From the NCBI GenBank assembly GCA_937625935.1, contig OW569381.1, forward strand, positions 372,001 to 436,000: DNA of 64,000 nt, given 5' to 3'. The position numbers and the translations under genes were made by a program. Positions 17,420-62,569 of the stretch are shown here, one piece after another (within the stretch, counting starts at the first letter, position 1; the number at the start of each line of letters is the position of its first letter). Under the pieces are notes generated by a model that ran no database searches, was not told the origin of the DNA, and saw only the letters and a program-made list of their open reading frames with translations. This stretch comes from Tetramitus jugosus. Its lineage: Eukaryota > Protista > Heterolobosea.

Positions 17420-17812
17420 TCATTGTCTCTCTATCTTTGTCGTCGTCATCATCATTATCATCATCATCCTTCTCACACGCAAGCTTGTGTGTGCTTGTGT
17501 ATGTGACTGTGTGTTGTGGTGGTGATGATGACAATGACGCTTAAAATATGACTTGCAAACGGCCAAACAGTGTGAGTACAAATTATCCATATAAGACCTT
17601 ATTGTTGATAGATTATTGACTATCGAAGATCGAAAATCCCGACACGTCAATACCAAATTCAACACATCTTCTACACCAAGGAACGAACCAACTAGATACA
17701 CAAATAAATCAATATGTATATCGGTTATTCTTACTTTTCTTTTGACTCCAAACTTTACCAATTGTTGGTGTTGGTTATGTCTTCTTTTGGCGCCTTTTCC
17801 TTGTTTTCCCAT
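17420..17812 (-). pseudogene. Truncated F-box-like ORF
   Basis: NLS-like N-terminus, then ITDIHIDLFVYLVGSFLGVEDVLNLVLTCRDF (F-box-like); the frame runs into low-complexity, intron-like sequence and no substrate-binding domain follows. Confidence 0.4.
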
Positions 17813-17954
17813 TTGTTCATTGATTTTTTTCATCAAAAAAAACTTGCAAAAAACAGAAAACAAACACTCTGAAGGACATCGTGAATGCGAGTGACCTGAT
17901 GATGAGTGTGAGTTTTCTGACGTTTGTCAAATTCTGTCCTATTGATACCATTAG

Positions 17955-18602
17955 AGAGGTGTTGAATTGTCCGATAACTTGAGTATTCAGATCTCATTGA
18001 TGACACTTGCTCTTCAAACATATCCTGATAACACTGACTATGTCAACAAGATTATTAATAACATTGCTAGTCAATTGAATAGCACTGCACTTGCTTCAGA
18101 TGAAATTGTAGACATGTCGAAGCGATTGTTGTTGGTGCCACTCGAGTCATACAACAATGTGCTAACAGTTTTGAAGTTGGAGAAGTATGGTGATATTATT
18201 CATTCTCTTGGATATGAACAGAGAAAGTTTATTGCACTGAGCATTGTGAGATGCGCACTTGACAATGGACACAAGATTTCAACATTTGAACAAGTGAACA
18301 AACTGTTTGATTTGATTCGTCCACTGTTGAAGGATGAGGAAGACCAAACAACATTCTCACCTTCTGACGACTCACCAATAGCTGCAACATTGCTCGAAGA
18401 TTTCGAAGAAGAACAGAACTTGATTGCCAGATTGGTTCATTTGTTTGATAATAGCGATACTGATCAATTGTTTAAAGTTTTGGCCGCAGCCAGAAAGCAC
18501 TTTGGTCAGGGTGGTGCCAAGAGAATTCAATACACATTGGTACCGCTTGTATTCTCCTACTTGAAACTTGCTCAGAGAATCTACAATGCACACTGCAAAT
18601 AG
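17955..18602 (+). pseudogene. VPS35: Isolated internal fragment of retromer subunit VPS35
   Basis: LSIQISLMTLALQTYPDNTDYVNKI...DFEEEQNLIARLVHL...ARKHFGQGGAKRIQYTLVPLVF is the middle of VPS35; no ATG, and no N- or C-terminal VPS35 exons anywhere in the window. Confidence 0.85.
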
Positions 18603-18919
18603 ACACCTCTTGTCGACTCTCCATCTTTTTTGATTGATTTGGTTGTTGTTGTTGTTGTTGATGTTCGTTGTGCGACTTGTGTTTTTCGTTGTTGTTGTTG
18701 TCGTGTCAGAGAGAAAGTTTTTCGTTGTCTTTCGTTTGGTTCAAGATTGGATAGATAGGTGGATATATTATAAAAAAATACAATAAATGTTGTATCAGTT
18801 TCCTCTAAGCTGCGGAATTGGTGCAGTTGTAAAAATTTCCGTTGAGACTGTCTTTACAACGACAACGGCCATCTACCTCGGTTTAAAAAGCGCTGTCTTT
18901 TTCGCTGTTTGATTCAACT

Positions 18920-18951
18920 CACACAACAAATACAACACACAACAAATACAA
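18920..18951 (+). repeat. Perfect 16-bp tandem duplication CACACAACAAATACAA in the Fanzor 5' leader
   Basis: 18920-18935 is identical to 18936-18951. Confidence 0.85.
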
Positions 18952-18958
18952 TAACATT

Positions 18959-20872
18959 ATGCCACGAGGCGTGCCTAAGGACGGCAAGAGAAAGAGAAAG
19001 AGAGAGACTGTCAAAAAGAATGAATACTCATCACATTACGTGGTCAAGGTCGGTCTGAAGTCTCTGTTGTTGCATCATCCAACTCTGTTACCAATCATAC
19101 AGACTCAAGCTCTGGAGATTACAAGGATTGCTCTTCGACTCACAAGATTTATAAACATATTCGTTTTGAGGCACTTGGAGTCTGACTATCAAATCCCTTT
19201 ATTAGATCAAGTGTTTCTTCAAAGATTAGGTTCTGTGTTGTTTGGACGCAATTCAAAACCAAGAGACAATAACTTAAGTCTCATCAACGAGTCTGTCAAC
19301 ATGGACGATGTAGTAGTCAAACTCAGAAAGATTTATCAGAGTTTTGCCACGTCCATCAATTATGTTGCCAGGTCTCTCAATGTCAACATCTCCAACATGC
19401 TCAAGTTCACATTGGAACCAAGACTGAGGAAGTATCTGAGGGTCAGAATGAATCAACTACACAGTGACTCATCTATTCCAAAGTCAGAACAAAGAAGGGT
19501 TGTTGAATACATTATCAGAAGGTTGACATTTAGCACTCCTGTCCACGATTTTATCAAATTGCCTCCAAAAGAGTTGATAGAGACGATTCCTGTGTTGATC
19601 CGAGAGGTTCGAACACTTGTTGATGCTAAAACTGATGAAGTAATTGATGAATCATTTGTGAAGAACAACACCAATAACATGCTGAAGTTTTACTGGCATG
19701 TTCAACAATTTCTGATCAACAATGATATGAAATCGTTTGCACTACTTCCTTTGTCTCATTTCAAGTGCAGGTGTATGGAGATTGGCACAAAGGAATTAGT
19801 TGATATGCTTAAACAGAAGAAACAAGGAAGACAAAAGAAGGGCGAGGAGTCAACTGAATTGAAGTGTAATCTCAAGTGTTTGAATGTTGGAACAAAGAAG
19901 ATTCAAATCGACTCTATCAGAACTGACGGTATTCAAGCCTCTGTTGTTCTCAGACATCAACTCGTTGGCAATCACAAGAACAATAAGGCAAAGGAATCCA
20001 AGGGCCAGAAAGAAGCAAAGAAGAGAAAGAAAGAAAAAAGTATGAACGAAGGTGCTGAATATTTGGTTGGGATTGACCCGGGTATTGTTACGTTGGTGAG
20101 TTGTGCAGATTCAGATGGCAAGAAGTGGGAGTTGTCTAACAAAACATATAGACATCTGTCCCACCATTCAAAAAACTCCAAGCGATTGTTGAAATACAAA
20201 GCAGAATGGAACGAAATGAATGAGAAGAACTTGGATGAACTCCAAAACTCAATCAAACAGGCCGGTGTACCAACAAGTGGTCTGTTCCTTGAACACATCA
20301 ATTCTGTATTGAAAGTCGAGGACGATTTGTTGAATTTTTATTGCACCCCAAAGGTGAAGAGACTGAATTGGGATAGCTATATAATGAGAGATAAGACGAT
20401 TGCCAATGTTATGAATGACTTTCGAAAGAGAGCAAATGGAAGAAGCATGTTAATTGGGATGGGCAATGCTGGTTTTGGTCATTGTTACAAAGGACATGCT
20501 CCAACACCAAAAGGAAAGCTATTGAAAAAGTTGAATGAGCACTTCAAAGTGAAAATGATCGACGAGTTCATGACAAGTCAGAAATGTCATCATTGCCATT
20601 CTCACATGAAGCCAGTCAAGCATAAGAGAATAGACAAGAATGGAACGTTGAATGTCTCTGTCGTCCGAGGAGTTAAACAGTGTGCAACCACTAAATGTTT
20701 AGTGACTCACAACAGAGACATCAATGCGGCCAAGAACATGCTCCATCTACTGAGAACAGAAATGGATGGACAGTCACGTCCCGATGCCTTCAAGAGGAAG
20801 AAAAAGGTCGCAAAAGAATTAATCAAAATGGTGGAACACCTCCAAGGCTCACTCCATCAAGCTGCTATGTAA
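18959..20872 (+). CDS. Fanzor1-type RNA-guided endonuclease (eukaryotic TnpB homologue)
   Basis: 637 aa, intronless. N-terminal NLS KRKRKR; FALLP; SIRTDGIQASV; RuvC-I VGIDPG (D373); canonical RuvC-II Glu position replaced (LIGMGN..F) with the relocated Glu in MIDEFMTS (E536); CHHC...CATTKC zinc finger; RuvC-III NRDINAAKNM (D587). Confidence 0.93.
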   Translation: MPRGVPKDGKRKRKRETVKKNEYSSHYVVKVGLKSLLLHHPTLLPIIQTQALEITRIALRLTRFINIFVLRHLESDYQIPLLDQVFLQRLGSVLFGRNSKPRDNNLSLINESVNMDDVVVKLRKIYQSFATSINYVARSLNVNISNMLKFTLEPRLRKYLRVRMNQLHSDSSIPKSEQRRVVEYIIRRLTFSTPVHDFIKLPPKELIETIPVLIREVRTLVDAKTDEVIDESFVKNNTNNMLKFYWHVQQFLINNDMKSFALLPLSHFKCRCMEIGTKELVDMLKQKKQGRQKKGEESTELKCNLKCLNVGTKKIQIDSIRTDGIQASVVLRHQLVGNHKNNKAKESKGQKEAKKRKKEKSMNEGAEYLVGIDPGIVTLVSCADSDGKKWELSNKTYRHLSHHSKNSKRLLKYKAEWNEMNEKNLDELQNSIKQAGVPTSGLFLEHINSVLKVEDDLLNFYCTPKVKRLNWDSYIMRDKTIANVMNDFRKRANGRSMLIGMGNAGFGHCYKGHAPTPKGKLLKKLNEHFKVKMIDEFMTSQKCHHCHSHMKPVKHKRIDKNGTLNVSVVRGVKQCATTKCLVTHNRDINAAKNMLHLLRTEMDGQSRPDAFKRKKKVAKELIKMVEHLQGSLHQAAM

Positions 20873-20981
20873 GTCCCGATTATGTAGGAGCGTTAAGGTG
20901 TCTTCTCGGGAAATCATAATTTTTTTATTATGGGTTTTATTTCACCGAACTACATCCTTAAACACATCGCCTTACAATTAA
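20873..20981 (+). ncRNA. Predicted Fanzor omegaRNA: scaffold about 20873-20961, guide from about 20962
   Basis: Complementary pairs TCCCGA(20874-79)/TCGGGA(20906-11), ATGTAG(20882-87)/CTACAT(20950-55), CATAAT(20915-20)/ATTATG(20927-32), and loop TTAAGG(20893-98)/CCTTAA(20956-61); position directly after the nuclease stop codon. Confidence 0.6.
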
Positions 20982-62497: not shown

Positions 62498-62569
62498 GGC
62501 TTAATAGCACAGCGGTAGTGCACCAGTCTTGTAAACTGGGGGTCCCGAGTTCGATTCTCGGTTGAGCCT
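62498..62569 (+). tRNA. tRNA-Thr(UGU)
   Basis: Acceptor GGCTTAA/TTGAGCC, D-arm GCAC/GTGC, anticodon arm CCAGT-CTTGTAA-ACTGG, T-arm CCGAG-TTCGATT-CTCGG; no encoded CCA; TTTT Pol III terminator downstream. Confidence 0.96.

Follow-up and report, generated by a model that had tools for sequence, protein, structure and literature searches.

The Fanzor1 open reading frame at 18959–20872 (+) of the window, as we call the whole 64,000-nucleotide stretch of Tetramitus jugosus DNA that was analysed, is virtually certain to be borne by a transposon. Its carrier is a young, multi-copy TIR family that has a TTAA target and no transposase of its own. We consider it likely that Fanzor1 is the payload of this non-autonomous cut-and-paste family, that the family is moved in trans, and that homing-type repair takes place. 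A more elaborate version of this reading is put forward tentatively: a Kolobok-mobilised Fanzor1 whose in vivo homing is recorded in the genome, with a W-TTAA TAM, truncations, mosaics and gene capture, and with relatives on virus-like contigs.

The open reading frame is intronless and, as the original prediction had claimed, runs through 637 codons without interruption. The motifs listed there were also recovered: TDG at aa 322–324, D373 within a DPG, E536, a four-Cys zinc finger (543–580; C543/C546/C575/C580) and an NRD with D587 (RD at 586–587). E536 is located seven residues upstream of the first zinc-finger Cys, and an NLS-like basic run occupies aa 10–15. On the basis of an alignment with SpuFz1, D373, E536 and D587 would be the equivalents of the RuvC catalytic triad. 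Across 80 homologues D373, G502 and R586-D587 are invariant, while E536 and the zinc-finger cysteines are conserved in at least 90%. The Fanzor signature (D...[TS][TS]...C4 zinc finger...RD), as defined in PMC3627910 and PMC10711439, is present in the form D-X(125,275)-[TS][TS]-XX-C4 zinc finger-X(5,50)-RD, with the TS found 165 residues after D373. Gly/Pro at the position of the canonical RuvC-II Glu, combined with an alternative Glu before the zinc finger, was likewise found (G502 and E536).

A Pfam search matched the 637-aa product to Cas12f1-like_TNB (E 7e-10), and the top PDB sequence match was SpuFz1 (E 5e-13, spanning aa 132–614). The original prediction had called for a structure comparison, and the one that was run placed the protein closer to solved Fanzor1s than to Fanzor2. 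A model of aa 363–637 (pLDDT 96) aligned with SpuFz1 over 243 residues at Z 18.9 and rmsd 3.5, followed by PpFz1 (Z 17.1), a mimivirus Fanzor2 (13.2) and TnpB 8h1j (12.0). Additionally, a relative with 75% identity was modelled at full length, and its TM values were 0.68, 0.65 and 0.62 to SpuFz1, PpFz1 and GtFz1, respectively, but only 0.21 to a Fanzor2 (ApmFz2; structure 9b0l).

With SpuFz1 the best match both by sequence and by predicted fold, we have hardly any doubt that the product of 18959–20872 is a Fanzor1, as had been proposed. Of the two reasons then given for this class, size holds; the Gly with a shifted Glu does not work as a diagnostic, since Fanzor2 and TnpB2 have it as well as Fanzor1 (PMC10530073; PMC13565253). 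Fanzor1 is told apart only by its size and N-terminal fold. Membership in Fanzor2/IS607EU was ruled out by the length of 637 aa, the presence of TIRs and a TSD, and the lack of a recombinase ORF. In a tree of 86 homologues, built by a quick method and from sequences other than the named Fz1/Fz2 references, the family forms its own well-supported clade. Homology search found more than 1900 relatives, so the bare finding of an intact Fanzor1 is ordinary.

The genome searched comprises 26.35 Mb in 56 contigs (given below as C-numbers); the published T. jugosus assembly paTetJugo1.1 has 26.3 Mb, and a second haplotype is deposited (PMC11106597). The original prediction had described a stand-alone nuclease embedded among housekeeping genes, and neither part of this description survived. 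The block 17549–20961 is repeated on many contigs with up to 99% identity, and the adjoining VPS35 ORF is cargo that lies within the element in about 20 copies. In general, the genome holds 18 further full-length open Fanzor ORFs with 65–100% identity, and many fragments besides. About 20 copies are two-ended, with TIRs and TTAA, and span 2.2–4.6 kb. Left ends of complete copies begin with TTAA-GG and a matching inverted repeat of 10–12 bp, whereas all right ends read CC-TTAA and are followed by unrelated flanks. The right ends are of two types (A and B), with termini GG..CC in both. The TTAA duplication flanks the two-ended copies, the surrounding sequence is unrelated between copies, and at two sites (L037 and L049) long open frames reappear when the flanks are rejoined at TTAA. 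No transposase ORF was present in any copy that we read.

The copy in the window measures 3.4 kb (17549–20961). A left TTAA at 17541–17544 (+), probably the original target site, is followed by 4 nt that were not found in other copies (17545–17548) and then directly by the element interior. The body of this left-truncated, non-autonomous TIR DNA transposon extends over 17549–20957 (+). It closes with a type A right TIR of 12 bp that ends in CC (20946–20957, +), and the right TTAA target-site duplication stands at 20958–20961 (+). The left TIR and about 271 bp of the element start are missing. This copy would not be mobilisable any more, while its nuclease and predicted scaffold are intact.

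End types are swapped between copies, and mosaic ORFs are present. A divergent Fanzor subfamily (L055–L058 and C32:2808-4989; 42–44% identity) has type A ends. This suggests that the type A element of the window is a chimera in which ends of the divergent subfamily are combined with a main-family ORF. The switch point of the presumed chimera is located directly past an A/T-rich hairpin. In L019/L038 (C2, about 595.5 kb) a separate element of about 160 bp, with its own inverted ends, interrupts the Fanzor ORF. TIR matches without a nearby Fanzor ORF were also seen (C10:247203, C24:126318, C25:365143 and C47:119538); such orphan sites may be candidate guide-only ('ghost') loci or the ends of other elements.

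Part of the evidence for the proposed homing comes from the junctions of truncated copies. We read seven left-truncated copies, in which a long junction repeat is clear twice and ambiguous once. The left junction of the copy on C48 consists of TTAA and the first 9 bases of its own right flank (13 bp), and that of the copy on C3 of TTAA and the first 12 (16 bp). The ambiguous case, L035 on C2, has 9 bases beyond TTAA (13 bp), but these lie within sequence common to the cargo of other copies. In the window copy and in one copy on C2, TTAA is followed by 4–6 nt of filler, and two more truncated copies show nothing; the window copy has TTAA plus one matching base only, and thus no long repeat. As a control, 175 pairings were made with the flanks of other copies, and none of the matches exceeded 7 bp.

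Losses are also one-sided: a hand count of the TIR lists gave 14 right-only against 2 left-only copies (binomial p about 0.002), and at the two left-only copies no mirror repeat was present. Additionally, the last ~50 codons of the ORF are 99–100% identical between copies whose bodies are only 57–85% identical, and 60% identical in a relative from another sample.

We propose that the element is moved in trans by a DDE transposase, most likely of the Kolobok type. By analogy with characterised Fanzor1s, the omegaRNA would be transcribed across the stop codon, the right TIR and the TTAA into about 15 nt of the flank. It would then guide the protein to the empty site, which would be cut 14–21 nt downstream. 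The right broken end would invade the filled allele or another copy, and synthesis running leftwards from the right end would restore the element. Where synthesis is incomplete, left-truncated copies would be left behind, some of them bracketed by TTAA and the first guide bases, and the copy in the window would be one such product. Template switching during the process would account for the mosaic ORFs, for ends being swapped and for the capture of host fragments.

Several features agree with this scheme. Right-flank bases can come to stand at a left junction if the site was first empty and was then broken to the right of the TTAA. Homology to a donor is confined to the right broken end, so that synthesis should start from the right and abort leftwards, and such abortion would produce both the right-only excess and the homogenised 3′ end of the ORF. 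The 9–12 nt past TTAA found in the repeats fall short of the 14–21 nt cut distance of SpuFz1 and GtFz1 (PMC10432273). Thus, the long repeats and the right-only excess fit Fanzor cutting of an empty site followed by incomplete copy-back, that is, homing, and we lean towards Fanzor cutting as the origin of the junction repeats.

The truncations and repeats might instead have been generated by the transposase or by host repair alone, with Fanzor as a selected passenger that has some other role. The routes would be one-ended strand transfer at the right end, abortive gap repair or templated insertion, and for this signature in Chlamydomonas CRe-1/2/3 one-ended transposition was indeed what was first proposed (PMC3627910). 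In favour of this reading, the numbers of truncated copies are small, and two of them, including the one in the window, carry only TTAA and a short filler, as one-sided gap repair at a break made by the transposase would leave. However, one-ended transfer is expected from either end, which agrees neither with the skewed counts nor with the lack of a mirror repeat on left-only copies. In Chlamydomonas, moreover, such TSDs are frequent only in Helitrons that carry Fanzor and occur in 1 in 200 of those that do not (PMC3627910). That this mark is found on a TIR element as well as on Helitrons suggests that Fanzor is what the cases have in common, and we regard the transposase or repair alone as an unlikely explanation.

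As regards the mobiliser, we incline towards a transposase of the Kolobok type. The TTAA TSD and the 5′-RR..YY-3′ termini of the family (the window copy itself is without a left TIR) are those of Kolobok, in which this combination is the signature and the RR..YY ends mark the difference from piggyBac (PMC9587614). Kolobok is also known from Naegleria (PMC9587614). The likeness is one of ends: a genome search with the Kolobok profile PF20700 gave no match, although its control was blank as well, and the genome searches turned up no transposase bearing such ends. A Kolobok-type DDE transposase (C/DxxH signature) was absent from the copies read, too. We also noted a YqaJ exonuclease ORF at C43:251443-252066, whose architecture resembles KolobokE, and a DDE+DEDDh candidate at about 41–47 kb of C38, which resembles KolobokD; neither has a matching TIR nearby.

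A piggyBac-type or another TTAA-specific transposase is an improbable mobiliser, and choosing it would change the family label only, not the Fanzor mechanism. The failure to detect a Kolobok-type transposase leaves room for it, as does the place of piggyBac among the Fanzor hosts listed so far (PMC13565253), and piggyBac-type ORFs are present in the genome, where PF13843 matches long frames at C34:198515, C18:38735, C18:150749, C30:266267 and C39:393561. However, no family TIRs were found near any of them. PiggyBac termini are pyrimidine-first (CC), and as a candidate for membership the family shares the TTAA TSD but has GG at its termini. Such 5′-GG..CC-3′ ends are RR..YY, as in Kolobok and not in piggyBac (PMC9587614).

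Retroposition of the truncated copies by a host LINE is very improbable. Truncation at the 5′ side and TSDs of 13–16 bp do resemble target-primed reverse transcription, but poly(A) is absent, the insert stops exactly at the TIR, and the repeat starts exactly at TTAA. Furthermore, 6 of the 7 copies have kept non-coding upstream DNA and what is probably the donor site of a VPS35 intron. Finally, a stand-alone, possibly domesticated nuclease gene amid housekeeping genes is scarcely conceivable. The window copy does lack a left TIR and a transposase and sits between two convergent host genes (ORF 16912 and a YME1 protease). However, only 6–9 nt changes separate it from mobile copies located on other chromosomes (99.6% identity), and it retains the right TIR, TTAA and cargo. 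The orthologous site is empty in a related species, where the orthologues of ORF 16912 and of the protease converge at a distance of 36 bp and have no insert between them.

The homing scheme makes the right end of the element part of an RNA. Single-sequence folds predicted a 5′ stem-loop of the omegaRNA at 20861–20891 (+), overlapping the stop codon, and a main stem at 20892–20961 (+), in which an internal TTAAGG (20893–20898) pairs with the terminal CCTTAA. In two metagenomic relatives the stem of the 5′ stem-loop is retained although its bases differ, and conservation of both arms of the main stem extends to relatives whose protein is as little as 44% identical. The fold of 20860–20961 has a z of -3.4, while RNAalifold, whose support was weak, did not recover a clean consensus for the omegaRNA. 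TIR and TSD would thus form part of the predicted scaffold, which is the reported Fanzor1 pattern (PMC10711439).

The predicted guide comprises about 15 nt of right flank (20962–20976, +), a length taken from PMC10711439. Allowing up to 2 mismatches, TTAA plus the guide was found in the assembly at this site only, and a search for the flank of this site in metagenomes returned 12 matches, all by chance.

A filled right junction still reads TTAA followed by the target, and hence the TAM must extend further upstream. In 15 of 16 complete copies an A or T precedes the left TTAA (background 0.54, p 7e-4), whereas one follows the right TTAA in only 13 of 26 (Fisher p 0.006). Because the left base is A/T-biased while the element ends in C, we predict a TAM that ends in TTAA and is probably W-TTAA, so that the element's own C-TTAA right junction would be spared. 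The asymmetry of the flanks could also come from the transposase's own preference. The window copy has C before its left TTAA, which mismatches the predicted W-TTAA; either it would cut its own empty site poorly, or it counts against this TAM. L036 (C24:244715) is the sole copy with a complete left end that has C before TTAA, and it has lost the last two bases of the right TTAA.

Upstream of the nuclease gene, the window copy carries fragments of host genes. An F-box-like fragment at 17549–17863 (−) is weak (Pfam E 0.024, below the cut-off), and the ORF at 17420–17863 (−) is chimeric, since it spans the element junction. An internal fragment of the host VPS35 gene lies at 17918–18602 (+) and contains a 211-aa ORF (17967–18602). 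It matches Pfam Vps35 with E 5e-44, is 98% identical to the host gene (source at C22:83229-83909) and is carried inside the element in about 20 copies. Upstream of L040, L041 and L047 we observed a different piece of VPS35, in which a middle fragment is joined to a C-terminal part, and other copies have zinc-finger and chromodomain-like fragments as cargo. About 185 bp of the left flank of L035 (C2, about 619 kb; part of a long host ORF) appear as internal cargo in L042/L043, possibly a direct record of cargo capture.

The family also bears signs of function. Relative to the window copy, dN/dS is 0.08–0.27 at every distance, in an alignment from which codons 349–363 were left out, and the D/E/D triad and the four cysteines are invariant in the 21 sequences compared. 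Purifying selection, the invariant triad and the conserved predicted omegaRNA argue for function and lend indirect support to the 'probably active' of the original prediction; judging by these sequence features we think it likely that the family is catalytically active.

Metagenomes from soil, groundwater and freshwater contain near-identical DNA, soil metatranscriptomes account for small shares, and near-identical proteins (P0005 and P0155) come from other samples. The closest outside relatives are metagenomic, show 59–75% identity and nest in the tree within the amoeba's own diversity. Three of the relatives (L051, L052 and L053; JGI 3300042923; 61–75% identity) are located on gene-dense intronless contigs, next to virus-associated genes (DUF4326, thioredoxin, PP2C and Gad2-like). 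L053 has type B ends (left TCAA, right TTAA) and no cargo, whereas L051 and L052 have different ends, without a TTAA TIR. Judged by gene content, these contigs possibly belong to an amoebal giant virus. In IMG/VR there was no protein relative, and the TIR pattern matched by chance. A tRNA-Thr(TGT) gene was seen elsewhere in the window, at 62498–62569.

Among known systems, Spu-1/SpuFz1 of Spizellomyces punctatus (8gkh; PMC10432273) likewise encodes a protein of about 640 aa with the same fold and triad. It is also multicopy (19 full-length), transposase-less and bounded by inverted repeats, its omegaRNA lies in the interval from the stop codon to the right end, and its TAM is expected to contain the TSD plus upstream bases. 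However, SpuFz1 and the Tetramitus protein are only 23% identical in the RuvC half, and Spu-1 has 30-nt inverted repeats and a CATA TAM in place of TTAA and 10–12-bp GG..CC TIRs. The Tetramitus family further differs in its host-gene cargo, two swapped end types, heterolobosean host and separate clade. GtFz1 of Guillardia theta (9cer) shares the Fanzor1 fold, and its TAM, TTAAN, resembles the predicted TTAA, but its loci are without inverted repeats and its third catalytic residue is Asn, while the Tetramitus protein has the canonical Asp and clear TIRs. NlovFz2 of Naegleria lovaniensis, a Fanzor2, also has a heterolobosean host and a rearranged RuvC Glu; it belongs to the other class, and its loci have a CCG TAM and no inverted repeats (PMC10432273), with the TM of 0.21 to the Fanzor2 9b0l cited above.

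Kolobok (PMC9587614) likewise combines a TTAA TSD, RR..YY termini and short TIRs, and occurs in Naegleria, whereas a Kolobok transposase was found neither within our element nor in trans. Kolobok as a Fanzor host was absent from the literature searched, the 2026 review (PMC13565253) included, and no publication covering both Fanzor and Tetramitus was found there.

The closest parallel to the junctions is provided by the Fanzor1-carrying Helitron2 elements CRe-1/2/3 of Chlamydomonas (PMC3627910, in which the signature was described in 2013; PMC10288648). They are also truncated at the 5′ side with intact 3′ ends, and they show variable duplications of 7–19 bp that begin after the target tetranucleotide, as well as short filler at the 5′ junction. 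CRe-1/2/3 are HUH/Helitron elements, in contrast to the TIR/TSD element of Tetramitus, and with such different transposition chemistry the signature they have in common does not come from a shared transposase. Fanzor has been tentatively suggested as its cause in CRe (PMC10288648).

Homing has been demonstrated for prokaryotic TnpB and IscB, but not for Fanzor (2026 review, PMC13565253). If the more elaborate reading given at the outset is true, the Tetramitus copies would provide evidence at the genome level that a eukaryotic Fanzor housed in a TIR/DDE element carries out homing. The role of Fanzor in its native host is at stake here, and the junction scars predict the TAM, the cut distance and the direction of repair. 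The protist is small and in culture, two of its haplotypes have been deposited, and for each of the roughly 19 intact copies the guide can be read off and the target predicted. The system also contributes a compact, divergent nuclease whose natural variants have 65–100% identity, and the range of Fanzor1 now takes in Heterolobosea and probably also a superfamily of transposons unlisted as a host. Compared with the systems above, what is probably new is the host lineage, the probable carrier superfamily, the cargo and the testable homing scars on sister copies.
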